Below are positions 1-20,344 of a DNA stretch of 20,344 nt, piece after piece. Made by a program: the position numbers and the translations under genes. The notes beneath the pieces were generated by a model. That model was not told the origin of the DNA and searched no databases. It saw only the letters and a program-made list of their open reading frames with translations. Numbering within the stretch: position 1 is the stretch's first letter; each line of letters starts with the position of its first letter. Source of the DNA: Oopsacas minuta (lineage: Eukaryota > Animalia > Porifera); NCBI GenBank assembly GCA_024704765.1, contig JAKMXF010000114.1, positions 1 to 20,344 of the forward strand, given 5' to 3'.

Positions 1-2
1 AA

Positions 3-620
3 GGAATAATCGATCAAACTGGTAACAAATGTCTTTTCGTTAGTTGTATCGATCAAGCAGATAAATATCGTCTGCTATTCGACCTTAAAGATCGAATAAT
101 TACCATTTATCCGGATTTCGAGCGAATTTTTGATGATGAAAGCGTTTCAGAGGATAATAATCCTCAGTTAGAAAAATTTGACGCCATTCCAAATCTCAAT
201 ATAGTATTGAATCGTAATGACGAGATAGCAATCGTTTCCAAACCACAGCATATGATTCAGAGCACACAATTAGGATCTGATAATTCTATATTGTCTGAAA
301 CTTATCCACCAAATTCCAATCAATGCTTAAATATGTCAGAATTTGCAGAAAATCCACTACATGCTAGCACAATATGTGAACCTATATCTGTGTATCATAC
401 TGGAAACTTGGAGTTAAGTCAATCCGCAACGAACCTTGATTTTCTACAGCAATTAAATCGAGAACAATTACTCACGCTTTTGCAACAAATGTGTAAAGAT
501 AGGAAATTCCTTAAAGAATGTCGTAAAACTCACAGAGTACTATTCACTCGTGATAGTGTATCATCTTCTACAACTGTGAAACGACCGAAGAGAGATAGGA
601 AATGGTATCACCTGTACTGA
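3..620 (+). CDS. A1: 3' part of an AIG1/GIMAP-like degenerate GTPase (5'-partial at the window edge)
   Basis: Frame 3 is open from position 3 (GIIDQTGNKCLFVSCIDQADKYRLLFDLKDRIITIY...), so the ORF-track start at 207 is internal. Nt 1-111 match the reverse complement of 19733-19843 at 106/111. It shares the C-terminal motif QQLNRExLxxLxQxMCxDxK with A2. Confidence 0.88.
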   Translation, partial: GIIDQTGNKCLFVSCIDQADKYRLLFDLKDRIITIYPDFERIFDDESVSEDNNPQLEKFDAIPNLNIVLNRNDEIAIVSKPQHMIQSTQLGSDNSILSETYPPNSNQCLNMSEFAENPLHASTICEPISVYHTGNLELSQSATNLDFLQQLNREQLLTLLQQMCKDRKFLKECRKTHRVLFTRDSVSSSTTVKRPKRDRKWYHLY

Positions 621-978
621 ATATGTCTACTTGCAATAACAATATACTACTTGCACATGCGGATATATGAAAGTTATAATTTGTGTCGTATTGAATTTCT
701 ATATATTTGTTAACTGCATTAGTTTTTGCTACCACTGCTCTCTCTAAACTCCGTCACGGTCCAAATATGTAAATTGATATTATGATGCAGTTGACATCCG
801 TTATCTCAACATTTGTTTGCTCGAAAGAACTTCATTTCCCTTCGACTCAAAATATTGGTATTCTAATACCCTTTATCCCGGCTATAGATACCGGATATCT
901 ACTGCATAGGTTATTATAATATTATTCTAAATACTTCTTATGCTTACAAACTATTTTTAAGATTATTCGCGTTTATTA

Positions 979-1998
979 ATGGGAAATACACACGGAGGTA
1001 CAGTCGCCAGAAAGAAAGATTACGACAATTATACAGTTATGCTGGTTGGGAATATGGGTGCAGGAAAGAGCAGTCTTGGAAACTTTCTACTGAAGAAAGA
1101 ACATTTTGTAGCCGCGGACAGTTTGGCACGAGTAACAGACAAGAACATGTGTGAGTGTACGAGTCTACCAGATGGTCTTACTCTAAGGATTATCGACACT
1201 CCAGGATTTGGAGACTTTAGGAAAAGCGAAGAAGTCAAGAGAGACCTGGCTGATGCTTTCTATGAAGCTAAAGATGGTGTGGATGCGTTTCTGTTTGTGA
1301 TAAGTTCAGCTGAACGAATCGGGAAAGAAAAGGTTTCACAATTTGAAATGTTTAAAAATTTTAACGACCATGAACATTTCTATGACTACGTAATACCTGT
1401 GTTCACTAAGGTTGATCAAAGGTTACAGAAAAAAGGCGAGAAGGACATCTACTCCTATGAGAAGCAAGAACGCTTAATTAATAGCGAACTTGAAAGCAAA
1501 CAGTTGGACATTTTCAGGGACAAAATTATTGCAAGAACTAAACAAAATTGGATGTGTATTTCTTCTACATCTAACGATGAATTCTACTACAGAGTTATAA
1601 TAAAACGACTGATTCAAACTATTGAAAGCATTCGTATTGAAAGACATGGAATGGTTTGCACAAGTAACATTATGGATAAGGCAAGAGTCCTGGATGATTT
1701 CGAGAAAGAGAGAAACAGGAGAGCAGAACAACAAGAAGTGAAGAGGGTAGTTGTTGGATTTCTACTGCATATCTTGCTTAATCAAATGCAAGGAGATGAT
1801 TTTGATGAAATATTCGGGGACGACAAGGAACGGCAGAAAAGGAATACAGAAAAGAAGGAGGCAGACAAGACGGAAGCAGTTGATAAAGAAAGAGACACCA
1901 AACAATCTGCAAGTAAAGAACTTTCTGATTCAGCTATAGCTACTGCTGCTGATATTCCGCGGTTGTTAAGTATTGAAGTAAAGAGCAAACCAATATAA
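979..1998 (+). CDS. B1: AIG1/GIMAP-like P-loop GTPase, 339 aa, probable N-myristoylation
   Basis: G1 GNMGAGKSS, switch I RVT, G3 IIDTPGF, conserved-box-like DAFLFVISSAER, G4 FTKVD. N-terminus is MGNTHGG; C-terminus is charged and helical. Paralog of B2. Confidence 0.92.
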   Translation: MGNTHGGTVARKKDYDNYTVMLVGNMGAGKSSLGNFLLKKEHFVAADSLARVTDKNMCECTSLPDGLTLRIIDTPGFGDFRKSEEVKRDLADAFYEAKDGVDAFLFVISSAERIGKEKVSQFEMFKNFNDHEHFYDYVIPVFTKVDQRLQKKGEKDIYSYEKQERLINSELESKQLDIFRDKIIARTKQNWMCISSTSNDEFYYRVIIKRLIQTIESIRIERHGMVCTSNIMDKARVLDDFEKERNRRAEQQEVKRVVVGFLLHILLNQMQGDDFDEIFGDDKERQKRNTEKKEADKTEAVDKERDTKQSASKELSDSAIATAADIPRLLSIEVKSKPI

Positions 1999-2479
1999 GG
2001 AACATTGTTAATAATAGCATAGTTATTGCATAAGTGTATTTATCATGTTTGTAAATATGAAAATGTGAATTCATCTTTATATTATTTTAATTGGTTTCCG
2101 ATTTCTGTATGCTGTCCAAAGATATGTAATAAGGGGCATCAAGGTATCGAGAATTATTTATGATTTTCATTCTGAGGAATTTCTAAATAGGAGTCAAGAT
2201 AGTTTAAAATACGTGAGTAACAAAATGGAACTCCTCTCGTTTGGACAGGATACGAAATATATGTCACTACACATTGAAATTTTGCTGTGGAGCATGACAC
2301 TTCTACGAAAACTTAATATTTCCAATTGTCGTAATAAAACACCATTTTGTTAACTTTTATTGTATAAATAAATAATCTCAGCAGTTAACCGTTTAACCAG
2401 CTTATGAATTTAGCCAAAGTTGCTGAATAGAATGATATTTAAAATATACGAGCCGCTTCGTTTGCTAGCACTGTGGGGC

Positions 2480-2880
2480 TTGTGGACATAAAGTGTTCGC
2501 ATGGGACTCGGCACGTCGTGCCTCGAATTTAGCAAAGTATAAAATTGCAAATTGAATTAATCAATTAATATTTCAACAATCTTTTACTTTATATTCATAA
2601 AAGCAACAAAGAATTTATATAAAAGAAACTTGAATATGCTAATTCGGATACAGCGTCCTTTGATATCCATCTATAGCCGTTAAGAGCAAGTCTCTACTTG
2701 AGAACGCGAAATTGGATTCAGCGTACTTGATTCCCCCTATATGTCTGTTGGGAGCAAGTCTAAGTATATTTCGAGATTTCAACTGTTTGTTTACTTTATA
2801 TTCATAAAAAACAACAAATATATTCACATATGATTATTTCGAAAATGTGAAAATCGGAATCAGCACACTCGATTACCCCA
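2480..2880 (+). repeat. Degenerate, tandemly rearranged fragments of the fold-back element family seen at 8453-8943
   Basis: 2480-2696 resembles the element's arm (ggactcggcac..gcctcgaattt..aaagtataaaattgcaaa). 2697-2789 matches the reverse complement of its right inner arm (cttgagaa..ggattcagcgtact..aagtatatttcgagatttcaact). 2790-2880 repeats the ttcataaaaa.caacaaa..tcagc..gattacccc block. Confidence 0.8.
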
Positions 2881-4522
2881 ATGTAATTATTAATTTTTCC
2901 TATATCGTGAGTATTTTCAACTCATGACACAGTGTAACAATTTTACCATTTACCGCCATCATTCATAGGTTCACTGAGTGACACAGGGTTAGAAGTTTCT
3001 TATTCAGGAGCATTTCATATAATTTTAGAAACTGATATATTAGAATACATAGATTGCGAATACCAGAAAATCATGCAAGAGAATTCATCTTGGGTGTTTC
3101 TGAACTATAAATTCCATGGCGATGATATTTGCAATAAACAACAACATCATAAATAAATAGAACACTATTATAGCTTCACAGTGTATAGGCGTTTCTGACT
3201 AGGATTAAATTTCGCTTACATCGTAATCTACTAGATTATCCTATGAACTAACTCGTGATTGTGTGATATTTCACATTTGGTGCAGGTTTGTTGTTTTTCT
3301 ATGCTTATTTTGATTTTTTCTTTCAAATTTTTGAATATTTATACAATTTTCGCATTTATGTGCCTAATTTAGGAAATAATCTTGAATTCTAGGTTCTGAG
3401 GTAATAGAAAATTATTTCAAACTGCTTAGAAAATCGTGGAAATTATTGAGGCACTCAATCTGATAATTGTGAAACTACATGGACGTTTCCTCGAATATAC
3501 CTGGGTATATTCTGGGCTGCTACACGGGGGCCTGTGGAAATGGGGTGAAAAATAGACCGAATTCCTTGTTCCATACAAATGAATCTATCAAATGCGAAAA
3601 CTGATAGCAATTTTCTCATTTTGTGGAGGTTATCCTGTATATTTAGTGACTACTATTTTGTTTCGAATAAAGAAGTACGTCTTATGGATATGCATACCTT
3701 GACAAGGCTATGTGCCGCTCGGTTTGTATTTTGTCTCATTTTACACATGTTGTGTATATAACTACCCTTGGTTCTGATTATCATTAGTTTGCAACCTACT
3801 GAGTACTGACTCCTGGCACTCCTGGCAGTCTAGATAGCTAGTCTCATGTGATAAAGGCTTATAGCATAGATAGCATAGTAAGTAATAGTAAATATCCTAG
3901 CCATATGATCGACAAAGGTTGGTAGATATGAACTCTATGAATATAATTATTTCAGCTCGGTTAAAGTATATACGTATCACGAAATGACCGAAGTCTAATG
4001 ATATAATCTGGCCGACTGGGGTAGAAGAATATTGAGAGGTTTAGAGCTCCCCAACACTCGTATAACGCCAGTATTTAGCAAGAGTAAAATAAAACTCTTT
4101 AGGAAAAGTTTTCACCTCATTGTTTACAATACAAAATTGTAAATAATGGGGTGAAAATTTACTATACAAAAATGTGAAGTCAGCGCCCTAGATGGATGTT
4201 TCGGGGGGCCTTACCCCCGACCCCCAGGTTTTACGCCTATGCCCTATGCTATCCATGCTATGTGACTGTCCTAATATTGAAAGAATTAGATATGTACACA
4301 GTAATAGTCAGGTAAACTTCCGAGATGCATCATCATCGGGAGTAACCGCTTGTGCCGTCTTTCGTAGGTTCCATGTAATGTATTATCAGCATATGAAAAT
4401 AATCTGTAGAGTATGGTATGCTGCACCTAGAAGGTCTGTAGCATTCAAGGTTTACCCATAATTAATTAACTCAGAATTATAACGAATATATTTCATGTTT
4501 CAAATACAAATGATTAGTAAAT

Positions 4523-4956
4523 ATGGAAGCAATTTGGAAATTTTTCAGTTTCTTTCAAAACAATCAAGAATTTCAAACTGTTTCCAATGATTCTGAAGTT
4601 AAAATACGGGATGAAGGTTTGGCTGACAATCCCAAAATGAAAGAATTATTGGATAATCCATTTGAAGCTATCCAAAATAATGAAAAGTTAAGAAACGCCG
4701 TGTTTGCGCAACAGAAACAAATAGGTTGGAATATTTTACCAACAACAAGTGAATACGTTACGAAAGATAACTCCACTGATCTCGGGTTAATCAAACTGAA
4801 TCATAAAATACGAATACAGCCATTGAGAAATGAAACAGGTTTAGTGAACATTTTGATGTTTGGAAAGAGTGGTTGTGGACAAACTACATTACTTTCCTAT
4901 CTAACTAAGAACAATCAGTTGAAAGGTGTAGACTCAATGTCTACTCAACAGTTCTA
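4523..4956 (+). CDS. A3: 5' fragment of an A-type degenerate GTPase, truncated at the N at 4957
   Basis: MEAIWKFFSFF...NILMFGKSGCGQTTLLSYLTKNNQLKGVDSMSTQQF. Nt 4827-4956 match the reverse complement of 20215-20344 at 129/130. Confidence 0.88.
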
Positions 4957-4957
4957 N
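4957..4957. other. Single N, probable contig junction or gap
   Basis: Two truncated A-type CDSs end exactly on either side of this base. Confidence 0.8.
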
Positions 4958-5229
4958 TTGATTAACCCGAGATCAGTGGAGTTATCTTTCGTAATGTATT
5001 CACTTGTTGTTGGTAAAATATTCCAACCCATTTGTTTCTGTTGCGCAAACACGGCGTTTCTTAACTTTTCATTATTTTGGATAGCTTGTAATGGATTATC
5101 CAATATTTCTTTCATTTTGGGATTGTTAGCCAAACTTTCATCCCGTATTTTAGCTTCAGGATCATTGGAAACAGTTTGCGATTCTTGATTGTCTCGAAAG
5201 AAACTCAATAATTTCGAAAAGAATTCCAT
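4958..5229 (-). CDS. A4: N-terminal fragment of another A-type paralog, truncated at the N at 4957
   Basis: MEFFSKLLSFFRDNQES...STDLGLI is colinear with A3 codons 1-90, with 17 amino-acid differences. Confidence 0.85.
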
Positions 5230-7247
5230 ATTTACTAATCATTTGTATTTGAAACATGAAATATTTTCGTTATAATTCTGAGTTAATTAATTATAGGTAA
5301 ACCTCGAAAGCGGCAGACCTTCTAGGTGAAGCATACCATATTCACAGATTACTTTTACTAATTATTCCTATGCAGATAATACATTACATGTAACCTCTGA
5401 AATAAAGCACAAGTGGTTACTCCCGATGATGCTGCATCTCGGAAGTCTACCTGACTATTACTGTGTACAGATGTCTAATTTTTCAATATTAGGACATTCG
5501 ATTTATGCCTAATTAAGTCCCCGAGTTCGTTGTTATTTAATGTATCTTATTAATTATTCCATTTATTTTTAGCGGTGGCGCTATACGGGTCTTGGGGAAC
5601 TATAAACCTCTTCTAGACCCCCAGTCGGCAGATTATTAGACTTCGGCCTTTTCATGATACGTATAAACTTTAATCCAGCTGAAATAAATATATTCTTAGA
5701 GTTCATATCTACCAACCTTTGTCAATCATATGGCTAGAATCAGTGCAATATTTATCCTGGACGACATTCAAAAGTACCCGAAACCTAATAATTTCGCACG
5801 CTCGCTACCCTCGCTTGTAAAATAGTTTAAAGTATGTACTCAACCCAAGAGACATCATGCAGGCATCCAGGAATTCGCTCTATTCAATTACTATTTATTG
5901 AAACATCACAGTGTTTACAATTGTGTGTGTCAGGTTATGAGATTTTATAGTTCAATATTAACGAATTTCGTCGACCTTTTCATAATGGATTGTTGGCCAA
6001 GATGTAGTTTTGAGATCTATAAAATATGCCTATGGCCACCACTGATTATGAATTATAATAATTATCAATCAATACATATTTTGAAAACAGCTCTTTTCGC
6101 AACTCCCTAGGATACCTGATTTCTCGTTAGAAACTAATGACTAGCACAATATTTATTTACAAATGTGCAAATTAAGATTTATCATATTGTAAACATCATT
6201 TTGTGACTATTTCATAGTTTAAAGCCAATCATACACCATGGAACTTTGTTATATGTATGTTTGTTGGAATTTTTATGCAAATTTATTGTATGCAACATGC
6301 CGTTACATTTGAATAGTTTATACCACAAATTGCATGTGAATGGTGGATATAATGTTTATAGAATTTCACAGTTTCCATTGCCCCATGTTATCATCAGTTA
6401 AACTGTGTGAAAATATGATTGATCGTATGATATCTACATTTGATACTTTTCGGACCGCGCAGGCTGACATGGTCTCGAAGAAATAGTAATAACCTACTTT
6501 ACATACTTATAATCATACCTCGTAACAAAAATTCCTACAAACACCTTTGTGATGTCAAATAATACAGATAAATAATAAACGATATATGAGTAGAAATTGC
6601 GAAAATAGAAACCATAATAAACTCACGAATCTGTCGATTATTATTTGTATCACCAAATAGTAGTTCTAGATGTCCAATTAATTTTATACAAAAGGAGGAT
6701 AAATATGAATTATTTATATACGTAGATCAGTATTGAGCTGAGTATTCTATTGCATACATCGTAATATACTAATATTATATGTTAAATTCCCACGGAGATT
6801 ACATCATATAGCATTATTCTATTTAACATCTTGTACACTTCTTATAGTATAAGTTTTGAGATTATATCATAACTCAACTCATTTCCAACCTCAGGTTTAT
6901 ATTGGTAATACTATGAGGCGGAGTTTCCGTCTGTTACGTACTGCTAACATAGCTTGCTATGAGAAAATAACGCTCAAAAATTTTGTGCGATTTTCTCGTG
7001 TTAATTTCCTTGAGCTGATATTTCCATAATCATAAGTTATCCTGAATTTGTATAGATTTACTTAATTACTTAAATATGGTTTATCCTTCCTTATTTAAGT
7101 TTCATTGAATTTGAAAATCAATATTGTAAGAATTATTAGCATTTAATACATCCAATATATCGTATAAAGTATATGGTTATTATAATTTTATTCTTTCATA
7201 AATACTTGTGTAAAGGCCAAAATTTAGTAGAGCTTATTCTATCAATA

Positions 7248-8030
7248 TTATCTACGCTTTTCAACCATCAGGACAAATAACAGCATACCAGCGGTAACCA
7301 CAGCAACCAGATATAGAATCGTAGTAGAAAGTACTCCCAATGCTATTAGCTTGAAAAACTCATACACATATAATAACATTGACACATACGTTCTCTCTAG
7401 ACAGCCTTCATTGTATATCTGCATGAAATCAGCTGTATCGCATTCAGTAGCGTTATAAAACACTTTACAACAACTGGATGGAATGTTTGACATATTTTCA
7501 TAACTGTCTGGTCCTTCGGGCCCGCAGCATTTCAATACTTGATGAAGTTTATCAATAGATGACTGATTTATTCGCTGTCTATCTGTGAAGTATCTCTTAT
7601 GGAAGATTCCAGAATAATCTTTGACATAGTTTTCATAGGAAAGCTCAATAGATATTGCGTTCCCATATGAGCCGCCTGTCAATTGAATGACAGTGGCAAG
7701 AAGCAGTATGTAGATGGTTGCACCGAGTAGAGCGATTGAAATCAATTTTGTATTATTTCGAGGTGAAAAGCTAGCGACAAACGCACCTAATACATTTGTT
7801 ATACATGCAATAAATAGTAACACCCCGCTGATCAATGTTGTTATGTAAAGCACTTTAAAGTGATGGCCATTCACTGGAGATGGTAGTTGAAATGTTTCGA
7901 GAATATTTCTGTTCGCTGCGTCGAAAACAGTTAAATAACTCCCAACAGCAAGCATTACAAGTGACATCATGAATTCAATACTTCCCATAATGGAGCATAC
8001 TAATATTAGAACAAATCTCAACTTCTTCAT
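7248..8030 (-). CDS. Tetraspanin, 260 aa, intronless
   Basis: Four hydrophobic segments (three N-terminal, one C-terminal). The large extracellular loop has CCG (LKCCG), PSSCC and EGC. Confidence 0.93.
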   Translation of the reverse strand: MKKLRFVLILVCSIMGSIEFMMSLVMLAVGSYLTVFDAANRNILETFQLPSPVNGHHFKVLYITTLISGVLLFIACITNVLGAFVASFSPRNNTKLISIALLGATIYILLLATVIQLTGGSYGNAISIELSYENYVKDYSGIFHKRYFTDRQRINQSSIDKLHQVLKCCGPEGPDSYENMSNIPSSCCKVFYNATECDTADFMQIYNEGCLERTYVSMLLYVYEFFKLIALGVLSTTILYLVAVVTAGMLLFVLMVEKRR

Positions 8031-8083
8031 TTCCAGAGATTTTTGTTGGACAATTTGTCAATAAATAATTGTTTGGGCAAATT

Positions 8084-8110
8084 TATATATATATATATAT
8101 ATATATATAT
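8084..8110. repeat. (TA)n microsatellite, 27 nt
   Basis: Pure TA run with 53 nt between it and the tetraspanin ATG. Confidence 0.95.
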
Positions 8111-8452
8111 GGTGAATTGTCACCTGACAAGACCCATTCAGAGTAACAATAGCATTTACACGAGTGTATTTGTCAATGTATTGAATTACTCACTGGCCAT
8201 GACTTTGGATACCATAAATAACTATAGAAATATGATTATCAGTCCACTAAACATTCCATCAAATATTTTATATTATCAATCCTCGATTGTTGTCTGATTA
8301 GAAATTGATTATTATTATTTAACTACACTGCAAAAACGACAAAATAACCTGTTAGGCAAAAACCCACAATGCTAATTACTAATAGGCCAGATTATTTTGA
8401 TAGCTAATTTACACCAATTAACAATAACCCATACACTGCATTAGTAGTTAGC

Positions 8453-8943
8453 ATGCTAACACTTTGTGTTGGCATTGGACTCGGCACTTTGTGCCTCGAA
8501 TTTGGGAAAGTATAAATTGCAAAATTGAATGAATAAATTAATAATTCATCTAATTGTTTACTCTGTATTCATAAAAACAACAAATAGATTTGCATATGGG
8601 AAACTTGCAAATGTGAAATTCGGATTCAGCGTACTAGATTACCCCTTTATGTCTGTTAAGAGGAACTCTCTAAGTGCATTTGAATATACAGCAAACATAA
8701 GTTGAAATCTCGAAATATACTTGGAGTGTTTCCTCTTAACAGACATATGGGGGGTAATCTAGTACGCTGATTCCGAATTTCGCATTCTCAAGTTCCTCAT
8801 ATATAAACTTGTTGTTGTTTCTATGAATATATAGTACACAAACAAATGAATTATTAATTTATTAATTCCATTTTGCAATTTTATACTTTGCTAAATTCGA
8901 GGAATGAAGTGCTGAGTCTATTGCGAACATAAAGTGTTCGCAA
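8453..8943. mobile_element. About 490-bp fold-back (near-palindromic) MITE-like element with small terminal hairpins
   Basis: The roughly 220-bp arms are imperfect reverse complements (e.g. tcagcgtactagattacccc / ggggtaatctagtacgctga). Each end has a 9-bp-stem, 5-nt-loop hairpin (8453-8475, 8921-8943). No TSD was recognised. Related fragments lie at 2480-2880. Confidence 0.8.
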
Positions 8944-9188
8944 ACTATGCAGCGCAAGCAATTGAAACGGCTCATCGATAATAAATCAAATTGGGAGAAA
9001 AGTACATATTAACCGAATTCTATTGTATTTATAAGTTTGTGGCATATATGTACAGCCTTTACAGACTCTACATCATATTCTCAAGAAAGAGTTGAATATC
9101 AAAATAGATTTCTCACAACTCAATGAAAACCTCAAAGAAGTAAGATTTATATGTTACATACTTACTACGTGTCTCCGTTTTATATAAT

Positions 9189-9318
9189 ACTAGCTGAGCT
9201 CTGCCCTTCGTGCGGATGCCTACTAGTCCTGCGGAATCCGAAAAAATTTCGTTAGTTGTCCTATCTTAAATTCAATTGATGCTATAGGAAGTACAAATAC
9301 TAATTTTATATTATAGAT
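9189..9318 (+). mobile_element. Possible short non-autonomous Helitron/Helentron-like remnant
   Basis: Starts actagctga..gcccttcgtgcgg and ends ttttatattatagat, which resembles the ends of such elements as I recall them. It is a single copy here and unverified. Confidence 0.3.
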
Positions 9319-9493
9319 ATCTCATGTCTAAGTATAGTTATTATAATGTTGTTAATATTATAATAGAAATCTGTATTATTACTCCAATTTCTATTGGAAG
9401 AAACTTTCTACTAATTTTAAAATATCATCGAAAGGTACGAAATATGATTTGGTTCCAAATGGGTCCAACCATCTCTGAGATGTTATATAGATA

Positions 9494-9717
9494 CAGTCAT
9501 CTCTACTTAATTGGGACTAATCTCCAGGAACGGAACCATCTCCATTAAAGTTAATATTAAATATTTTCTGTTAATCGGGACAAACTCTGCTTAATCGAGT
9601 GAAACTAGTAACTCAATCAAGACGAAACTTTTCTTGAGTTAGGAATTCTAATAAGCTAGGTATATGTGACTACATTTTAGATTAATTCGGCCAATTCAAA
9701 TTCTATTTACCAGTCAT
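9494..9717 (+). mobile_element. Probable left end of a Tc1/mariner (pogo-like) MITE; right end not seen before the gap
   Basis: TA|CAGTCATCTCTACTTAATTGGGAC resembles the TA|CAGT termini at 11324 and 18849. An internal subrepeat ttaa(t/tc)gggac is present. Confidence 0.35.
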
Positions 9718-9718
9718 N
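9718..9718. other. Single N, probable contig junction or gap
   Basis: The NHL reading frame is open right up to this base, and the upstream sequence is unrelated. Confidence 0.75.
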
Positions 9719-10891
9719 CTACAACTCAGAGAGAGTATCCTCCTCTCTCGTATTGATCAAATAGAGAAAGATTATAATAACAAAACTCAGAAAATGAATA
9801 AATTAGTTGAGACATTGAATACAAATAAATCAATGAATTCAGATACAATAACAGATAACGAATTGAAAGACACTCTAGATGGAGTTATATCATTAATCAA
9901 CAAGATAACAGAACTAACATCTGAGACAGACATTAGTATTGAGTTTGGATGGAACAATCAATTTGAGACTGACATAGAACAGCTAGGGAGCATTAAGCTT
10001 AATAATCAGACTGACATATCTCCCACCCGCACCTTCCCTCCTCAAGTGAAGCCTGTTGTACCTAACTACAAGGCTAAACAGCTGCCTACTGCTTACTACT
10101 GTAATCATTCAGACAAGAAAGCTCCAGGAGAACTGTACTATCCCAGAGGTATAGCAGTTCTTAACCAAACTGGAGACATATACATAGCGGATTATTGCAA
10201 CGATCGTGTACAAGTATTTAGCTGTAACGGAGACTATCTCTTCATGTTCAGTGAGAAGATGGAAAATCCAGTAGGTATCTGTATATCTCAGAATAAAGTG
10301 TTTGTTACACAATGGTATGGTCATTGTATTAATAATTACGAGCTAGAAGGGAAACTAATCAAGAGTGTTGGTAGTAAAGGGAATGGAGAAGCTCAGTTCG
10401 ACGGTCCACGCGGTCTAGATGTCTCTGATAGAAATAGCAATGTGTATGTATGTGATTGTAATAATCATAGAGTTCAAATCTTAACTCAAGAATTCAAGTT
10501 CCATTCCATGCTAGGGATTGATTTGTTCAACCATCCACGTTACGTTAAGGTTACAAGGGACAGAGTATTGGTGCTAGATGAGAGTGATTCGTGTATGTTT
10601 GTGTTCAATTCAGATCACGTTCTAACCAACAGACTGATAACTAGAGGTGGTGGCAAACAAACAAACTATCCATGCTGTTTCGACATAGACAGAGACTATA
10701 ACATCATTATGAGTGACTACAGAAATCACTGTGTGTACGTATTCAATCAGGAGGGAGAACAGATACACAAGTTTGGGAAGGAAGGTCAGGGTATCGGGGA
10801 GTTCATTAATCCCTGGGGAATAGCACTAGACAACACAGGACACATTATTGTTGTGTGTAAGAAGAATACTAATTGTCTACAATTCTTTTGA
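9719..10891 (+). CDS. Coiled-coil plus six NHL repeats (TRIM-NHL-like beta-propeller), probably 5'-partial
   Basis: Six NHL repeats (YPRGIAV..IYIADYCNDRVQVF, GPRGLDV..VYVCDCNNHRVQIL, NPWGIAL.. etc.). The frame is open 25 codons upstream of ATG 9794 (LQLRESILLSRIDQIEKDYNNKTQK) to the N. Confidence 0.9.
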   Translation, partial: LQLRESILLSRIDQIEKDYNNKTQKMNKLVETLNTNKSMNSDTITDNELKDTLDGVISLINKITELTSETDISIEFGWNNQFETDIEQLGSIKLNNQTDISPTRTFPPQVKPVVPNYKAKQLPTAYYCNHSDKKAPGELYYPRGIAVLNQTGDIYIADYCNDRVQVFSCNGDYLFMFSEKMENPVGICISQNKVFVTQWYGHCINNYELEGKLIKSVGSKGNGEAQFDGPRGLDVSDRNSNVYVCDCNNHRVQILTQEFKFHSMLGIDLFNHPRYVKVTRDRVLVLDESDSCMFVFNSDHVLTNRLITRGGGKQTNYPCCFDIDRDYNIIMSDYRNHCVYVFNQEGEQIHKFGKEGQGIGEFINPWGIALDNTGHIIVVCKKNTNCLQFF

Positions 10892-11195: not shown

Positions 11196-11255
11196 AGTAA
11201 TTAACAGGGGCCTTACCTAGTGAACACGTTCATTTTATCGTCCGTATTTCATGTA

Positions 11256-11711
11256 CATTCAACTCCCGTCATATCTAAGCTCAAGGAACCGCGAAAATGA
11301 CTTCGTTATAACCGATGAATGTACAGTCGAACCTCCGAGATCCGGACCTCCAAGATACGGGCACCTCCCTCAACCGGGCACCCTTATTTTATATCAGTCC
11401 AAAAGAATTTCACCATTTCATATAATTCTCCTCATACTAACGTTGACTTCAGCTACTACATTCATATGGGATTACGTTTGTATACAGTAAGTAAACTTAA
11501 TAACAGAATTCGAATACCTAAGGGAACTCATATGTACATTATGGGTTGTAACTACCATAGAGTTAATGATATTTCCGAGATCCAGGCACCCTCCGGTCCC
11601 ACACTGCCCGGATCTCGGAGGTTCTACTGTATGTTGCTTTTGACGTTTTGGGACTGGAATGGGACCATATTTGTACAATTCCACATTTCGGTATAACGGG
11701 AGTTGACTATG
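11256..11711. mobile_element. Older pogo/Tc1-mariner-like MITE (outer host of a nested insertion)
   Basis: Imperfect TIRs: TA|cattcaactcccgtcatatc on the left and ggtataacgggagttgactatg|TA on the right. An internal ttcgttataaccga motif is present. Confidence 0.65.
11324..11629. mobile_element. 306-bp pogo/Tc1-mariner-like MITE
   Basis: 22-bp TIRs CAGT(C/A)GAACCTCCGAGATCCGG with 1 mismatch, flanked by TA at 11322-11323 and 11630-11631. Confidence 0.9.
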
Positions 11712-11771
11712 TAATGTTATCACAATTTTGAGATTAATGAATTAATTAATTTTCTATTTATAGCTATCCCA

Positions 11772-12527
11772 ATGTTAGACCTACTATTTGAGATCAGCTG
11801 TGGTGTTATATACTTATTATCCACACCTTTTTGGTTTGTAATACAAGCTATAGAATATGTATTATACCTAGTGGTTCAATGTCTGTATTTGTGTGTATTC
11901 AGCTTAATCCCATTCTTACTGACAGTAGTAATACCGTTCATATGGGAGTATGTTGGATCTCCAATCACAGATATTCTCATTTTTATCGGTAAATACGTTG
12001 TGGATATTGCATTGATTATTATCAACTTTCTGCTATACCCTCCTATACCTTCTGGTATTGGTAAAATCGTGCTTATATTCGCTAGTGCTTATTTTCTGAT
12101 GAGATTTTCAAATTTTTTCCTAAAACAAGCTTTAAATCCGATTTTCGTAACGATTGACCTCTATTTCTCTCCGCTATTAATTCCTTTCAAACTTGTTTAC
12201 TCGGGGCTAAAGTTTGTTTATACAGCAGCTCGTGGCGGTAAGAAACAACAACAAACTCCCGAGGAGATAATACCGGAATATTTGACACAAGTACGACCAG
12301 TCGAACAGCCATTACAGAGAGCCAGACGACGAATAGTTAAAATCACAAATCCAGATGACACCTTGTGCATAGTTTGCTTTACTAACCCCAAATGTATGTT
12401 AATAAGGCCTTGTAATCATGCTTGTTTATGTGTTGACTGTGCTAAAATGTTAACTGAAGAAATGCCAGTAACGGAATGTCCTCTATGTAGAACTATTATT
12501 AATCGAATTGAAAGAATTTACATATAA
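11772..12527 (+). CDS. RNF26: Multi-pass membrane E3 ligase with a C-terminal RING-HC finger, RNF26-like
   Basis: A long hydrophobic N-terminal half is followed by the terminal RING CIVC..PCNHACLCVDCA..ECPLCR..RIYI. This architecture matches RNF26; orthology is untested. Confidence 0.7.
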   Translation: MLDLLFEISCGVIYLLSTPFWFVIQAIEYVLYLVVQCLYLCVFSLIPFLLTVVIPFIWEYVGSPITDILIFIGKYVVDIALIIINFLLYPPIPSGIGKIVLIFASAYFLMRFSNFFLKQALNPIFVTIDLYFSPLLIPFKLVYSGLKFVYTAARGGKKQQQTPEEIIPEYLTQVRPVEQPLQRARRRIVKITNPDDTLCIVCFTNPKCMLIRPCNHACLCVDCAKMLTEEMPVTECPLCRTIINRIERIYI

Positions 12528-13434
12528 TTCCTTTCGGATTTTTTCTTGCTACGAAGTTGTATTCGAGTTTATCAATCTCTATAAATGATTTTATTTCTTC
12601 TTTTGTTAATATTATAGATTTACCAGGGATATATCAATTGCTATGGAGTCTTGTTATACACTAGCTGCATCTGGTTAATTTTGTGGGTGTCTGTAGTATA
12701 TGGGACGATTATATGTCAGCGGTCAATTATCGGAAAGATCTTTCTCCTGAGAACCTAAGCTATAAGGTATGGGTAAAGCAAAATTGAAGAATACTTTCGA
12801 AGCAAACAGCTGATTATTGCAAAATATACCATTATCTGCTAATCTGCTTGTTTTAGTAATCCAAATTTTCACTTTTATGAATATCAAAATGTATTCAATC
12901 TTTACGGGGATTGGCACATGTACTCTGTACCCCTCCACTCCCTGACAACCTAGCAACGCAACCGGACCATAACAATGCACATACAATTAGATTATTAGTT
13001 TGGGCGTATTAGTTAGAACATTCTGTAAAATAAGAATATTATTAACCCATCACAATAGATTAGCTACTGAGATTAAATACTGGTAAGCTCTCTTCTTCTT
13101 TACCACTCTAGTCAGCCTCTCTGTCCTATGACATCAAGGTGTTACAAGAGCGGTACAATATGCTTATACGACACACTCGATTCATATCGAAATGTATAAA
13201 TAGGAGAGCATCCTCAATTAGCAAATATAAATATTTAAAATAAAATCTATGAGAAGTGAGAACACTGGATATAAGAACTATCCGCATGGAAAACGGTTCT
13301 CATATGAACAGTAAATCACTGGTGATGTTCTTATAACTGGCATCAGCCGTAAATGAGTAAATAATAATAATAACAAATGCTTCAACTAATGTATTTATGA
13401 AATCGGATAGAAATCGAACTCCTCGCTTATCGAA

Positions 13435-14762
13435 TCAGCGAAATAGGTAAACACAATTCCTAGACAAACTCCAGTTATATCGGAGTAAATTGTGCGGTTC
13501 TTTGATATTCAATACATCCAAATTCGTACTGTAATACATTCATTACTTACCTGTTGAGTTGTTTGATGTATCTAGAGATGGAGAAGTATTTCCCTCTTTA
13601 ATCGACTGTTCTAGTAAATTCTTGAGAAAATCCTTTATCAATATAACCTACATATGATTACACAAGTATTGTTTGATAAATATTGAAGATTCCTTTACAT
13701 AACTTACTTCGTTGTTAAGTTCCTTCAGTTTTTCCATCACTTTCCCATTCAAGTTTGTTTGTTCTTTTGGTTTTACATTGTTTGATGTATATTGACGCCT
13801 TATGGAAGGTAAACAAATAAATATATAAATGGATCCTCGTTAACATGCTTGCCCCTTGAGAATCATATCTCATGGCATACGCATGATACGATATATGCGT
13901 GTACATGTACGTACATACAAATACATCTAAGCAGGCTACTTACCAATATTTTTGTACTACAAGCGTTGCTTGTAGCCTTCCTTGTTGTTCTTTCCAATTT
14001 TTAAGTTTTTGAACCTATATTGATACGAACAATTAATCAATATGTCAAATTATATTCATATCAATTGTGATATGATAAGAATGGGTTGTTACTAAGCAGA
14101 TAACCCCTCCCCTTGGAGCGTTACGTAACGTGAACGACCTCCTTTGTGAGTTAGGAACAGGACAAAGTTCATATTTCCTAAACCTGGGCTTCAAAGTTTG
14201 CAAAATTTGGTTTATTTATTTCTAGGAATCGAATGGCTGCGAAATTACACTTATCTCTTGTTAATTATCTACAAAGCTAACCTCTGTAGTAAGTTCTGAT
14301 ATTTTCCTTGATTGAGTTTCAACCAAATCTTCCAATCTATACCGATAGAGATATTTTAATTCAACATTCACCAAAATACGTTTTAAAATAATTTAATTGA
14401 TTTGCCCTTATGAAAGCTAATAAATAAATAATCTCTAACTTTATACAAATCTCCAATACTTTATCCATTTCTCTTTTATCCTCTACTTCTTCTGAATCAG
14501 AATTATCACCAGAATTGATCAATTCTCGGATATTATCCGTGTCTTCTCCATTATTAGCAAATATTTTTTTCTGTGTGTATGCCTGTAATAGAGTTCTCAT
14601 TGGTACTACAGGTAGTGACATTGTCATATCATGTGATTGCTCCTTGTTTTGTAATTCTATTTCTTCCTTGTTTTCATCTTGAATTGAGGTAAGTTTATCG
14701 GTCAATTCCCCTGGATATATAATATCCTCATCAGAAGACAATAAATCTAGTTTAGACTCCAT
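13435..14762 (-). CDS. Spliced gene, about 233 aa: acidic N-terminus, coiled coil, IQ-like motif
   Basis: Exons 14762-14440, 14336-14282, 14014-13944, 13798-13708, 13647-13551 and tentatively 13499-13435. All introns are GT-AG and phase-compatible (three have GTAAGT donors). The protein reads ...ICIKLEDLVETQSRKISELTTEVQKLKNWKEQQGRLQATLVVQKYWRQY... The last exon and the start are uncertain. Confidence 0.7.
14103..14143 (-). mobile_element. Possible solo TIR remnant in intron 2
   Basis: The reverse complement reads aggaggtcgttcacgttacgtaacgctccaaggggagggg, with the 12-bp palindrome cgttacgtaacg at 14119-14130. It resembles DNA-transposon termini, but no partner TIR was seen. Confidence 0.3.
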
Positions 14763-14821
14763 CTATTTGGATGTTTTATTAAGCGCTGAGCTTCAGTGAT
14801 ACGTGGTTGCCTCACTGGTTG

Positions 14822-15103
14822 GAAACTTGTTTCAGCTCCACCGCTTGCATCAGGTTTACCTGCCGCCTGAATTTTGTCAGTATTTCACTATTTTCTCAGT
14901 GAATTTCAACTACACAATATATTTACTAGCTAACGGGTGTATAGCAGTAGTCACTCACAAGCGTGAATTAACATATTTCGAAAGCAAAGTAATAGAAAAA
15001 TTTCCATGGAATGGCGACTTTTATTACGATAACGTCATAAATAATGAGATGCCACCCGCCGCCCGCCCGCTTAAATTGCATGATGCGAGCTGAAACAAGT
15101 TTC
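14822..15103. mobile_element. 282-bp MITE-like element with perfect 17-bp TIRs, superfamily uncertain
   Basis: gaaacttgtttcagctc (14822-14838) and gagctgaaacaagtttc (15087-15103). The flanks are ttg and tta, a possible degenerate 3-bp TSD. A relative lies at 11051-11195. Confidence 0.75.
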
Positions 15104-15630
15104 TTAGAGTCTCAATAGATAATATTATAATTGTAAAGCTACCATACGTAAATATTCACTGAGCTATCTAGTAGCTGAATTCTTTAACTGTATAGCTTTG
15201 TTTATCTTCATGGCGGTTTGGTCACCTGTGGGAAACCATTCAAACTAGCGGTAGTCCTTGTCGAAATATTACATGATATAGGAGACGTGATGCATTGTTT
15301 TTACCAAATTCGCCCATATTTTCTATGGCCAAACTTCCTTCCTCATAGAAAATTCACATTTATAGAGACTTACAGAGATTACATTGTTTGTTAGAAATCA
15401 TATTGTCCACTCCAAGATATTGATAATCGCTCTTAACGCCCTTGCGAATATTCGATGAGTTGATAACGTGAATAATATAATCGGAATATTTACTCTGACC
15501 AACGCGAAGACAATTTAAATAGTAAAGATACGATTTAATGAGATTCATTCTGAAAATAGAAATACAAATATATTAGTGAAGAAATATGAATAGAATAACT
15601 ACGAGGATTTAGATTGGAGGTTTGAGGAAG

Positions 15631-16756
15631 TTAGTATTTCCGGAAGCAGCCTTGATCTTGAATGCCAAAACTCATAATATTATCTGAGTTGTCAAGAATT
15701 ATTTCGTTTAAGAAAGAATGATGTCCTCTACCCAGTATATGCTTCATCGCTCCTTTGAGGTGAGAAGATACGAATTTCGTTAGCAGAACTGTCTAATTAA
15801 GAAGTTGCGCTTCTTATCAATTGTGAAGAAGGTAGGTGCTGTCTTTGGTGGCTGATTCTGTTTAGTTAGCTGTATACTCTTCTGGAGAGCACAGTCTTGG
15901 TTGTAGCAGTAGATGGAGTTGTTGTTTGAGCTAGGGTGTAGATTGTGTCAGAGAATACTGTAATGTCTGAAGGGAGTTTGAGTTTTCCTTAGCCGAACTG
16001 AAATAGAATTCAATATTTGAATTATTTGCATATTCCCAGCACATACATATAGCAACCCAATTTCATAACACAATCCTGAGATATTAGTAAATCGCCCTGG
16101 TGTATTGCCTCTTGAGCCTGTTTCCTTTAGGAATTGTCCTGCTAGGCTAAACTTCACAAGAGACTCTTTAGCTTGATCAGTAACGAATACTTCCTCTTTT
16201 GACAGACATATACCCCATGGCTCCTTCAAGTGGTCAGTCCCAAAAGAACGTAAATACTTTCCTTCGGTATTCAACACTTGAATACGACTGTTGTAATAGT
16301 CACAAATGTAAAGTTCATTACTTGCTCTATCTACTGCTATTCCTTACTAATAGGGTTTTATTTCCTAACGTATTCGGGGATCAGTTCAATCAAATCAATT
16401 TCTGCGATTGTCTTTACAAATGTTATCGCTGTAACAACTGAACTCAACAAACTCCAAATTTCAACCGGCACCTCAACTCTTCTAACTTTTGGATTTGCTC
16501 ATCATATTTTTGTGCCGTTGAATGTTACCAAATGCTAATAAGAATAATTTATCAATTTGCTTTCAATATTCTAAGCTGTTGAATAGCTTCCATTAACTCA
16601 GCATTTCTATCATTACCCTCCTTCATTTTGATCAGTCGAGATCTTAAATTTCTCTGAATCATCCGAGACACGCGTAAAGTTCGCCAAAATTTGCAGAACC
16701 TCTGCCATCAACAAATTCGTAATTTGGTTGATATCGAATTCTATTGCTGTGACCAT
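15631..16756 (-). pseudogene. Coiled-coil plus NHL-repeat pseudogene with multiple frameshifts and stops
   Basis: Fragments lie in changing frames from ATG 16756: ..KMKEGNDRNAELMEAIQQLRILK.., EIDLIELIPEY, GIAVDRASNELYICDYYNSRIQVL, KEPWGICLSKEEVFVTD, GKLKLPSDITVF, FFTIDKKRNFLI, KHILGRG..GCFRKY* (stop at 15631-15633). Confidence 0.85.
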
Positions 16757-17377
16757 TTCGTCTGAAACAAAGTGTGTGTATTTGAAATGGTTACAATTTG
16801 TTTATTCAACTCTAAATGTTGTTATTTGTTTGTAATTTCTCTATTTAGTATTTATATTTTATTTATCTGTGCTTTTATAAATTTATTAAAACACGGTCAT
16901 GGCCGTTTATTATAAACCAATTTGTTGGCCCAAATAAATCATTTTCATCAGATTTTCATTAAATGCTAGGTTACTTCCTTATATGGCGATAATATGATTC
17001 CATTTCTAGAAATTTAGAGGTGTAAGCCATTTGTTGTTAATTTTTTGGAACAGGTGTTTTTAGGGTAATTTGAACATACTGAATCCAAAAATCACTCTTC
17101 CAAGCTGAAATATGACGTAATGACCGTCAAAAATTACTTTGGAATAGCGGCTGTTGGGCTAATTTTCTTAGGCAACACAGAAATATCTCAGGAATGTGGC
17201 AACCAAATACTTTATCACAGCTATATTTATCTTGCTAGCTCCCAAGACTACAAAATCATATTTTGACTGAGGTATTATAAGAGGTAATATTTCGCGGTCC
17301 AGACGGTCCATGGAATTACCGGTACGCTGCAATACTGAATTATACTTATATCCCATCAACCAATGGGTCGGTTAATG

Positions 17378-17449
17378 ACTAATTTACATCTCTCTGAGGT
17401 TGACAGGACTCAGCGTTAAGTCCTGTCAACCTCAGAGGTGTAAATTAGT
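17378..17449. repeat. 72-nt near-perfect hairpin
   Basis: A perfect 19-bp inner stem ctctgaggttgacaggact with an 8-nt loop cagcgtta, plus an 11-bp outer stem actaatttaca beyond a small bulge or mismatch. Confidence 0.9.
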
Positions 17450-17622
17450 TGTATGTATTTATGTGCATAGTTTGTAAACTATCTACAAAAATTCCATGCA
17501 ATTGTTAGTGAACCTGGGGTATCACAAAATATTTTACAAATATATATGCAACTACAAGACATATACAGCAGAAGAGCCTCTAAGTATAAGACTTAACTAA
17601 ATCAACTTTTTTGTTCAGCTCA

Positions 17623-18565
17623 CTATTTCAGATCCTCTGCAGTGCCTGAAGCACCGGTCTGCGCATCTTGTTTCGTGCTAGCTCTCCTATTTTCTGCTTC
17701 CCTCTTCTGTCGTTCTGTATCATTACCAAACATTTCATCAAATTCTTCCCCCTGCATGTTGTTAATTAGGATTTGTAGTATCATCAATAGCACAATTCTT
17801 CTTATTTCTTCTTCTTCAGCTTTTTCGTTCTTCAATCTTTCCATTTTCATCTATATCTTTCACCTTATCCAAGATCCGAGGTGTGCACACCATACCTTTC
17901 CTTTGAGTGCGGATACTTTCGATCGTACCAATCAGTCTATTTGTTATAACTTTGTAGTAGAATGCGTCTTTCGATAAATTGGAAATACACATCCAATTCT
18001 GTCTTGCCCTGCCAATGATTTTGTTCTTGAAAATATCAAGTTGATCATTTTCAAGTTCACTATTAATTAAGCGTTCTTGCTTCTCATAGGAGTAGATGTC
18101 CTTCTCGCCTTTTTTCTGTAACCTTTGATCAACCTTAGTGAACACAGGTATTACGTAGTCATAGAAATGTTCATGTTGCATAAATTCTGCAAACATTTCA
18201 AAGTGTTTAACCAGTTCTCTCCCGATTCGTTCAGCTGAACTTATCACAAACAGAAATGCATCTACACCATCTTTAGCTTGATAGAAAGCTTCAGCTAGGT
18301 CCTTCTTGACTTCTTCGCTACTTCTAAAGTCTCCAAATCCTGGAGTGTCGATAATCCTTAGAGTACGACCATCTGCTAGACTGGTACACTCACTCATGTT
18401 CTTTGCTGTTACTCGTGACATATTGTCTGCAGCTTTAAATACTTCTCTCTTCAGTAGAAAGTTTCCAAGACTGCTCTTTCCTGCACCCATTTTCCCAACC
18501 AACATAACTGTATAATTGTCGTAATCTTTCTTTCTGGCGACTGTACCTCCGTGTTTGTTACCCAT
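17623..18565 (-). CDS. B2: AIG1/GIMAP-like GTPase with a +1 frameshift at 17844-17847 (313 aa if corrected); sequencing error or pseudogenising mutation
   Basis: MGNKHGG, GKMGAGKSS, DTPG, FTKVD. Removing one A from GATGAAAATG joins ORFs 17816-18565 and 17623-17850 and restores a gapless alignment with B1 (DKVKDIDEMERLKNEKAEEEEIRR vs DKARVLDDFEKERNRRAEQQEVKR). Confidence 0.85.
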
Positions 18566-18632
18566 TTTGTTGAGGGCTATTATAGCTATTAGTTAGAATC
18601 AGACTTTTAGACGAAATATTATTATGTATATA

Positions 18633-18849
18633 CAGTAAATATCTGTTATAACAAAGTGATTGTTACCCTATAGCTTGTAAGCAAGGTTGCAACCGAATAG
18701 TTCAGTATTCGGTTAGGCTACTATTCATGAATACTGATATTCGGTTTGAGCGGTTTCAACCTTGCTTGTAAGTAATAAATAGCATTTACCCTCTTACAAT
18801 GAAATGAACCCGAGGTCCCGATACCGTGCGTTATATGGAGAGTTTACTG
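18633..18849. mobile_element. Decayed pogo/Tc1-mariner-like MITE upstream of B2
   Basis: TA|CAGTAAAtatctgtTATAAC on the left and GTTATAtggagagTTTACTG|TA on the right, preceded by ggtccc. The TIRs are imperfect. Confidence 0.5.
18682..18764. mobile_element. 83-bp hAT-like mini-element with an 8-bp target-site duplication
   Basis: A perfect TSD CTTGTAAG at 18674-18681 and 18765-18772. TIRs are CAAGGTTG(C/A)AACCG (13/14), with internal tattcggtt subrepeats. Confidence 0.85.
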
Positions 18850-19223
18850 TACGTATGTCGAAATTGGATTGAAGGGAATTTAGAAAACAGAAGGATTTTC
18901 TGCGAATTAAATTAGAAAAACTATATCTTGAAATTATAATCATATCCTGGGCTGTAGGATATTACACTTTTACTCGTATTTGAGAGGTAAATTAATCCCT
19001 GAGTAAATTCATGTGGTGTATAGTTTGCAAATAATTTCATCAACTTGGCCTCTTTATAAAATTATGGTTATTGAATCGCAAAATATATATTTCTCCTGAC
19101 CCATGAGTCTGGTTTGCACACAGTTACAATAAATCTACTATACAAATTACTAACTATAGTTTGCATACTGTTTGTAATACATTTTGCTGTCAAAAGATAT
19201 ATGTTAGTGTGCAAGGATACTCT

Positions 19224-20344
19224 TCAAGGTTGAAATTTTTCCTTTTTCCCTTTTTTCAACGGAGGTTCTTTAGTAAGAAATAGTTTACTAAATTTTTTAT
19301 TGCACAGTTTCCTACCTTTTTTGTCCTGACACATTTCCTGAACTAACTTAATTAACTCTTCTCTATTGAGTTGCTGAATATGGTCAAATTCATCATCTTC
19401 TGCCCCAAAATCCATATTCGGTATTCCACTAATCGTATTAGCACGCATCTTTCTATCCGCGAGGTCAGAGGTATTGTCATCTGTATCATGATGATTGGAT
19501 TTGAATTCTTTCATTTCAAATGATGTAACATTTGAATTTTCACGATTAGATTGTGTGAATGGATGCAGACTAACTATATTATTCCCTTTGAATAATTTTT
19601 TATGGTTGCTCATAGGTAGTTGATGACATTCTCTATGATTGTCCTGCAATTCAACGGATTTTTTAGGGTAAGGTATGCTAGTATTCGAATCAGTTTCCGT
19701 TTCAGATAAATAGCCATTAAATCCGTTAAATCGATAAATGGAAATTATTCGGTCTTTAAGGTCGAATAACAGACGATATTTATCTGCTTGATCGATACAA
19801 CTAACGTAAAGACATTTGTTACCAGTTCGATCGATTATTCCTTTCACTTTCTCCATACCTCGCATTGCTATCTGTGATTCCAGCTTAGCAACTCTCTCTT
19901 CAAACGTGCTACATCCATTCAGTTCATCGATTGTTGTGAATACAATTACAGTTCTCTTCCACATTTCTTCTTTATCCTTGAAATACAATTCTGAAAACTC
20001 TTCCAGTTCATCAATCAATTGTGAGATGATTCTTTCATTTGACTTTATCAAGAGAAGGAAGATACTCACTCCTCCCTCATCATTCACACCTTCTATTAAT
20101 CTGTTCCAGTGTTCTTCCAGTTGTGGAATTTCAAAACCACTACACATGCCTGGAGATTCGTGGATTCGTACTTTAGCCATTTCTGATTTGCTTTGTATAT
20201 CAATGGTTTCAGCATAGAACTGTTGAGTAGACATTGAGTCTACACCTTTCAACTGATTGTTCTTAGTTAGATATGAAAGTAATGTAGTTTGTCCACAACC
20301 ACTCTTTCCAAACATCAAAATGTTCACTAAACCTGTTTCATTTC
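19224..20344 (-). CDS. A2: AIG1/GIMAP-like degenerate GTPase (5'-partial at the window edge)
   Basis: G1 GKSGCGQTT, G3 IHESPG, conserved-box-like SIFLLLIKSNER, G4 FTTID, then a low-complexity linker, the QQLNRE helix and a basic tail. The frame is open to the window end; the ORF-track start at 20327 is an internal GTG. Combined with the A3 N-terminus it would be about 474 aa. Confidence 0.9.
   Translation of the reverse strand, partial: NETGLVNILMFGKSGCGQTTLLSYLTKNNQLKGVDSMSTQQFYAETIDIQSKSEMAKVRIHESPGMCSGFEIPQLEEHWNRLIEGVNDEGGVSIFLLLIKSNERIISQLIDELEEFSELYFKDKEEMWKRTVIVFTTIDELNGCSTFEERVAKLESQIAMRGMEKVKGIIDRTGNKCLYVSCIDQADKYRLLFDLKDRIISIYRFNGFNGYLSETETDSNTSIPYPKKSVELQDNHRECHQLPMSNHKKLFKGNNIVSLHPFTQSNRENSNVTSFEMKEFKSNHHDTDDNTSDLADRKMRANTISGIPNMDFGAEDDEFDHIQQLNREELIKLVQEMCQDKKGRKLCNKKFSKLFLTKEPPLKKGKKEKFQP

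Follow-up and report, generated by a model that had tools for sequence, protein, structure and literature searches.

Why should a gene for a GTPase-like protein that has lost the residues with which GTPases hold their nucleotide sit, time after time and on the same strand, directly upstream of a gene for a relative that has kept them? The question is raised by a 20,344-bp stretch of DNA (hereafter the window), which is an entire contig or scaffold from a hexactinellid (glass) sponge and carries genes of two kinds, both of the AIG1/GIMAP type: A, with a degenerate nucleotide-binding loop (P-loop), and B, with a canonical one. A preliminary description, based on the letters of the window, had proposed that A and B form a co-inherited pair, duplicated in the window as a unit and in inverted orientation. 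We find that a conserved pair of one dead and one live gene is very probably real, that the inverted layout is doubtful, and that a working partnership between the two products can be proposed. The genes and gene fragments on which the argument turns are these (aa, amino acids; ORF, open reading frame):

3 to 620, plus strand: A1, the 3' part of an A-type (P-loop-dead AIG1-like) gene; open frame with its stop at 618-620, aligning to the A family.
979 to 1998, plus strand: B1, an intact canonical AIG1/GIMAP-type GTPase of 339 aa; ORF, Pfam AIG1 73 bits.
4523 to 4956, plus strand: the 5' part of an A-type gene (N-terminal helical region and P-loop GKSGCGQT), ending at an N; ORF.
4957, no strand: a single N at the junction of two converging A 5' fragments; the join has no read-contig support.
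4958 to 5229, minus strand: A4, the 5' part of another A-type gene, cut at the join; ORF, inverted repeats I2, I5 and I6.
17626 to 18565, minus strand: B2, a canonical AIG1 GTPase; Pfam AIG1 80.9 bits, translation, tblastn.
19224 to 20344, minus strand: A2, an A-type gene cut by the contig end and present here from its P-loop on; ORF, family alignment.

The evidence that A and B belong together comes from comparison with other loci. Starting from A or B homologs we took 12 A/B loci, of which 11 are non-redundant, and mapped every A- and B-like segment by tblastn; an extra locus (L013) was taken around the nearest canonical relative of A. The adjacency count spans six ENA sponge assemblies, Oopsacas minuta and the window, two near-identical haplotype contigs having been removed. 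A lies directly upstream of B, on the same strand, for 21 of the 24 B copies, and a partner was found in 5/5 non-redundant A-centred and 4/6 B-centred look-ups. Arrays reach five units (L006), with A-to-B spacers of 77-2628 bp (median 502) and B-to-next-A distances of 1206-2525 bp; at both ends of the window A and B share a strand and are separated by some 360-660 bp. In six other assemblies the units are found on long contigs of 0.35-1.2 Mb. An orthologous tetraspanin gene flanks arrays in at least five species (L001, L003, L007 and L008 included), and since it is conserved at 57-80% identity the locus must be ancestral and the species well diverged. We conclude that the A-B pair is old, that copying and inversion have affected it as one unit, and that genes within arrays have undergone conversion and exchange. 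The proposal of a co-inherited pair is thus strongly supported by order and strand, by the tetraspanin neighbour and by the invariance of the A motifs described below; homologs of the two genes are mostly linked.

B itself is a conventional member of its family. Some 300-340 aa long, it has all canonical G motifs and a C-terminal hydrophobic helix, and both window copies score well above the Pfam AIG1 (PF04548) cut-off of 27 bits, each with GxMGAGKS, DTPG and TKVD (in B1 an N-terminal MGNTHGG is followed by GNMGAGKS, DTPG, TKVD and the C-terminal hydrophobic helix). Across an alignment of 17 B sequences GxxGAGKS is invariant or nearly so, DTPG is present in 16/17 and TKVD in 14/17. The best match of the B profile in the PDB is GIMAP4 (1e-9), with GIMAP5, GIMAP2, GIMAP7, GIMAP1, septins and Toc33 also recovered, and the B block GVDAF.FVIS.AERIG aligns with the conserved box of GIMAP4. 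All 23 distinct B proteins start with MG and 22 of them with MGN, a start that resembles an N-myristoylation signal; the strict myristoylation pattern fits 13/23. With two AIG1 proteins of Oopsacas minuta B1 has 71-76% identity, and with a transcript of Vazella pourtalesii, where B is therefore known to be transcribed, 74%. The ratio of non-synonymous to synonymous divergence (dN/dS) of B, 0.10-0.55, indicates purifying selection. A and B have an invariant Arg in common, which an alignment of hidden Markov models to GIMAP4 places one residue off the GIMAP position; it is at most a candidate equivalent of the Arg finger of GIMAP7.

From its N-terminus, A (about 440-690 aa) has one to three copies of a helical motif, then a G domain, a variable and probably disordered stretch, and a tail that is polybasic/aromatic, Cys-rich or transmembrane. 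In every copy of A the P-loop Lys is replaced by Gln (GKSGCGQT), the switch-I Thr by Gln or Arg, the G3 Asp by Glu (ESPG) and the G4 Lys by Ala, Ser, Thr or Gly (T-x-I-D versus TKxD), so that A does not carry the canonical G1-G4 nucleotide-binding motifs. The altered motifs are themselves rigidly kept: GxSG[CS]GQT, ESPG and FT.ID are invariant in 18/18 long A ORFs (17 intact genes plus the end-cut A2 of the window), one of them just 34% identical. In the window A1, which is cut off by the contig start, ends in a polybasic/aromatic tail (..RKWYHLY), and A2 has GKSGCGQT, ESPG, FTTID and a polybasic tail, and is 42-69% identical to 24 sponge homologs.

Aligned with hhalign, A and B match with 97% probability (E-value 1e-10, 199 columns, 24% identity), A's Gln falling on the P-loop Lys, its Gln or Arg on the switch-I Thr, ESPG on DTPG and T-x-I-D on TKVD. 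A Foldseek search with a low-confidence structure model of one A member ranks GIMAP2, GIMAP1, GIMAP5 and GIMAP7 first (template modelling score, normalised by target, 0.56-0.71), followed by Toc33/34. Against the AIG1 cut-off of 27 bits, members P0002, P0053 and P0017 score 28.7, 27.8 and 23.5 bits, respectively, and P0055 gives no match; for the window's A2 the one Pfam hit is a weak match to MMR_HSR1, and a search of A sequence against the PDB returned a weak Rab25 P-loop match and nothing else. Profile alignment and predicted structure both indicate that A has an AIG1/GIMAP-like fold. Its dN/dS (0.22-0.59) points to purifying selection and, as judged from its sequence, A is a maintained gene and not a relic; a GTPase fold whose degenerate G motifs are kept by selection is what a pseudo-GTPase would show. 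Two other descriptions of A were considered and rejected. That A is a pseudogene family is ruled out by intact ORFs, dN/dS below 1 and invariant motifs, and that A and B are one gene, or a fusion, by the conserved stop in which A ends, after a conserved polybasic tail, and by the MG with which B starts.

Some A copies depart from this plan. The N-terminal motif (NP.L..IL.NP.EA...NE.LRN), which no Pfam family matches, occurs three times in a 685-aa A protein and again near the C-terminus of a 751-aa one (L001:16385-18442, minus strand; P0053). Other copies have lost, in frame, either the P-loop or the G domain in its entirety (L003:14212-14988; L006:5426-6625 and 18114-18863), keep an open frame and still lie upstream of an intact B. 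In the window A4 is 93% identical in DNA to 4523-4794, with homology extending into its upstream region, and all 17 codons that differ between the two do so non-synonymously (dN/dS 3.9). Seven other paralog or ortholog pairs give a dN/dS of 0.23-0.63 for the A N-terminal region, and diversifying selection on it is not supported (binomial p of about 0.08).

How widely is A distributed? An exhaustive profile search of 1.84 billion representatives returned 29 proteins, from these sponges alone. The nearest outsiders (P0061, P0063, P0065) have a canonical GCGKS P-loop and an E-x-PG at G3 in common with A. One of them, P0063 (470 aa; L013:7798-9210), lies alone within an intron of MCM8 with no B nearby, in an assembly that also holds an A-B pair. 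Since these nearest relatives keep the Lys, its replacement by Gln is a derived and fixed trait of the paired A family.

Within the window, the idea that the module was duplicated as a unit turns out to be too simple: B1 and B2 are close, and neither the A tails nor the intergenic DNA can pass for clean copies. Over 720 nt the DNA identity of B1 and B2 is 85% and their synonymous divergence (dS) 0.33, which rules out that the two ends are one locus assembled twice. A1 and A2 are 95% identical (dS 0.135) over 111 nt, the first of A1 and the last of the G domain; beyond this stretch their tails have diverged (dS of about 1.35), and the intergenic DNA cannot be aligned. Other arrays are mosaic too (L003, L006, L007), with dS of 0.04-0.07 between A G domains versus 0.7-0.9 between N-terminal regions. 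That dS should differ roughly 10-fold between regions of single A comparisons suggests that the dead G domain is being homogenised by gene conversion while the ends of the gene diversify.

B2 has a peculiarity of its own. Its ORF (18565-17816) is 249 aa long and is interrupted by a 1-nt frameshift in a run of five A near 17820, and the 66-codon tail (17844-17626), with the hydrophobic helix and a GASGTAEDLK motif, is intact in the +1 frame. The shift could be a sequencing error, a very recent truncation, or a site of slippage that yields tail-less and tailed isoforms. An independent shift, a few codons away and with the tail likewise intact, is found in LOD99_9994 of Oopsacas (L004:2130-2420).

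Is the layout of the window, with two modules pointing inward, to be trusted? The order A then B does hold at both ends (3-1998 on one side, the ORFs in 20344-17816 on the other), and the two additional A-type starts that had been noted, at 4523 (plus strand) and 5229 (minus strand), are present as ORFs. The inward-pointing geometry, on the other hand, hangs on the N at 4957, where two A-type 5' fragments converge tail to tail (4523-4956 on the plus and 5229-4958 on the minus strand). Positions 4827-4956 are identical at 129 of 130 bases to the reverse complement of the last 130 bases of the contig (20215-20344). We placed contigs of four public runs that hold this DNA, all from one sample, on positions 1-6000. 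In 4/4 runs a contig crosses 4956 and extends 109-111 nt further, and the 30-nt consensus of this continuation is the exact reverse complement of 20185-20214, within the body of A2; among the read-contig pieces listed for these runs, none spans N4957.

Because read contigs run from 4956 into the body of A2 and none bridges the N, the inverted layout is doubtful: 1-4956 and the remainder were probably joined in the wrong relative orientation, and the mirror image is an assembly artefact. The same continuation makes the start at 4523 most likely A2's own 5' end, the two parts then most likely forming one in-frame gene of about 475 aa. The modules then probably stand in direct tandem, A1->B1, a spacer of 2.5 kb, then A2->B2; such a spacer would be at the top of, or just beyond, the 1.2-2.4 kb that separate B from the next A in other arrays. 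Since chimeras can arise among short-read contigs of a multi-copy family, the evidence on the join, while strong, is not final. In other species, long contigs do carry genuinely inverted pairs (A->B B<-A; L001, L008, L009). The case shows that a single-N join can produce a spurious palindromic gene arrangement.

What might a dead and a live GTPase do together? In the account that we favour, A would be a pseudo-GTPase with little or no nucleotide binding or hydrolysis, held on membranes through its tail; both proteins would act at membranes, where A would pair with B across the conserved nucleotide-side (G) face and so control B's GTP-dependent dimerisation or oligomerisation. We propose such control because there are precedents for it: GIMAP7 stimulates hydrolysis by GIMAP2 via dimerisation (PMC8201404), and GMS IRGs regulate GKS IRGs by direct interaction among family members (PMC2532785, PMC3681737). 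A regulator/effector relationship or an immune role for A and B is something we infer only, from these analogies, and we regard the account as a whole, conserved unit and partnership together, as evenly balanced between right and wrong. A more specific version is unlikely, namely that the unit is a sponge "guard" switch like IRGM/IRG. Here A, nucleotide-dead and anchored by its tail, would label the membranes of the cell itself and keep myristoylated B inactive; B would oligomerise only on membranes without A, for example those of vacuoles that hold microbes. If this is true, one of the earliest-branching animal lineages would have evolved, independently, a cell-autonomous defence of the missing-self kind.

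The most serious competitor to a partnership is that A and B are passive tandem paralogs: two old AIG1 neighbours with independent functions, copied together by segmental duplication in a birth-and-death cluster and left side by side because rearrangement is rare. We consider this possible, if somewhat doubtful, and a number of observations count in its favour and against our own account. In Aphrocallistes vastus a block of 50 tandem AIG1-domain genes, of which 38 have a single exon, has already been reported, and glass-sponge genomes have extensive microsynteny (PMC10282587), so that adjacency could persist passively. Segmental duplication copies neighbours together in any case, and across an A-to-B spacer this short random breakpoints would rarely separate the unit. 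The partners also decay separately, with a broken B beside an intact A and a G-domain-deleted A beside an intact B. Some copies are unpaired, namely three B genes (one of Oopsacas in L005, the second in L010, a divergent one in L011) and a single A in L001, and no degenerate A was found upstream of the solo B in L010 or L011. The dS values of A and B are discordant in several pairs (L008, L003, the window). Furthermore, no A transcript was found in the collections searched (the run searches returned only four runs, all from a single sample of unstated library type and stored as contigs), and the structure model of A has a mean predicted local distance difference test score (pLDDT) of 49, with 65-74 in the G domain, for which reason no residue-level claims are drawn from it.

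The gene trees, in which congruence between A and B had been expected, bear this expectation out in part. For 13 pairs, the A and B trees have 6/10 splits in common versus 0-1 for random labels. The two types of pair in L001 and L009 are orthologous in the A tree and in the B tree alike, and in three lineages both A and B duplicated after speciation. The agreement mostly reflects species history: pairings permuted within samples agree equally well or better, which is again what passive paralogs would give, and there is one supported local exchange, in the L003/L006 array, where one pair has swapped partners with strong support. As a test of unit duplication, co-phylogeny proved to have little power beyond the species signal.

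Three observations count against passive neighbours. Order and strand are held in 21/24 cases across deeply diverged species, and inverted copies stay whole. Family A is known solely from genomes that also carry B. Finally, the nucleotide-side face is the most conserved part of A despite the lost nucleotide contacts; a face that is conserved without the residues that contact nucleotide calls for some ligand or partner.

That ligand might be a nucleotide after all. The non-canonical P-loop of A, with its Gln, the neighbouring Lys of GKSG and invariant Cys residues, could bind nucleotide or some other ligand, and A could act alone as a membrane-tethered switch or enzyme. Consistent with this, GKSGCGQT, ESPGMCSGF and FT.ID are strictly invariant, beyond the needs of a mere scaffold, and the G4 Asp is retained. 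However, four canonical contacts (G1 Lys, G2 Thr, G3 Asp and G4 Lys) have been lost together, and the Lys found at P-loop position 2 is common to GIMAPs generally, B-type proteins and human GIMAPs included, and so is not a relocated catalytic Lys. We therefore judge a live A to be distinctly unlikely. That there is no real feature here, but one locus assembled twice or a decaying family of A pseudogenes, is scarcely credible: the contig does start and end within A genes, the join at N4957 is unsupported, B2 is frameshifted and the A copies at the Oopsacas loci examined are broken or fragmentary, yet B1 and B2 differ at 15% of bases, the A tails are unalignable as copies, units of this kind recur in six further assemblies, on contigs of 0.35-1.2 Mb, and A ORFs are intact with dN/dS below 1.

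The window as a whole is AT-rich (31-39% GC), and its genes are eukaryotic and mostly single-exon: besides the two AIG1-type GTPases they encode a tetraspanin, an NHL propeller and a membrane RING protein. Its remaining features are:

2437 to 2986, also 8466 to 8986, no strand: an interspersed repeat with direct and inverted copies (families D1-D3 and I7-I9), from repeat comparison.
7248 to 8030, minus strand: tetraspanin gene; Pfam Tetraspanin 60 bits.
9794 to 10891, plus strand: NHL-repeat (six-bladed propeller) gene; Pfam NHL 95.6 bits.
11772 to 12527, plus strand: gene for a multi-pass membrane protein with a C-terminal RING (C3HC4) finger; Pfam zf-C3HC4_3 43.7 bits.
15948 to 16277, minus strand: fragment of an NHL/propeller gene, downstream of B2; weak Pfam DUF5128 match.

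In the repeat regions the summed word depth of read contigs is 2,000-10,000 versus about 100 in the flanks, with many alternative joints; the repeat is probably a high-copy spacer element outside genes, resembling a miniature inverted-repeat transposable element or a short interspersed nuclear element. A second single N, at 9718 and 76 bp upstream of the ATG of the NHL gene, may mark another assembly join. NHL propeller genes adjoin A/B or B genes not only in the window but also in Oopsacas minuta (L004:3997-5259, L005:3615-4883) and in L011, and may represent a second co-located expanded family.

An older survey did not detect GIMAPs in sponges (PMC8857920), and AIG1 expansions have since become known from a glass sponge (PMC10282587). 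What appears to be new here is a P-loop-dead partner family in a two-gene unit; our literature search found no description of such a GIMAP partner family or of such a unit. GIMAP/AIG1 GTPases are mechanistically poorly understood. A motif-dead and a motif-complete member side by side would offer a natural two-component system in which to test control of GIMAPs by hetero-dimerisation with an inactive paralog, an idea that so far comes from GIMAP7 and GIMAP2 and, by analogy, from GMS and GKS IRGs. Should the pair prove to be immune-related, regulated defence GTPases would extend to sponges.

How, finally, does the pair compare with known systems? Septins and the chloroplast proteins Toc159 and Toc33(34), of the paraseptin/septin branch, have a related G-domain fold. 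They function through hetero-dimers across the G interface, and some septin subunits are catalytically inactive. Their roles are others, in chloroplast import and the cytoskeleton, they are not known to be organised as gene pairs, and for both A and B the scores with GIMAPs are the higher ones.

The IRGs offer a functional parallel. This family, too, is split into members with a substituted P-loop Lys (GMS; Irgm1-3) and canonical ones (GKS; for example Irga6), and its regulators are sited on membranes. Some IRG effectors, Irga6 among them, are N-myristoylated. Unlike A, from which several more motifs are gone, GMS proteins are still able to bind nucleotide, and fixed adjacent gene pairs of regulator and effector are not known among IRGs. 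No IRG Pfam model is among the matches of A or B (those of A taken to an E-value of 1), and the resemblance would be one of functional analogy only, not of membership.

Nearest of all are the GIMAPs. The AIG1 block of Aphrocallistes vastus belongs here, although the paper that reports it describes no P-loop-dead partner family and no two-gene unit (PMC10282587). With vertebrate GIMAPs, A and B have in common the fold family (B being nearest to GIMAP4, the A model to GIMAP2, GIMAP1, GIMAP5 and GIMAP7), an organisation in tandem gene clusters, and C-terminal membrane anchors or helices. There are also differences. No G motif is missing from GIMAP2 or GIMAP5, both of which bind GTP, but A lacks the Lys of G1 and of G4, the Thr of G2 and the Asp of G3; and in the sponges the two genes are kept in a fixed order and multiply together as a unit, with a B that starts with a myristoylation-like MGN. 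As we propose for A and B, in GIMAP7 and GIMAP2 one member modulates another by dimerisation of their G domains (PMC8201404).

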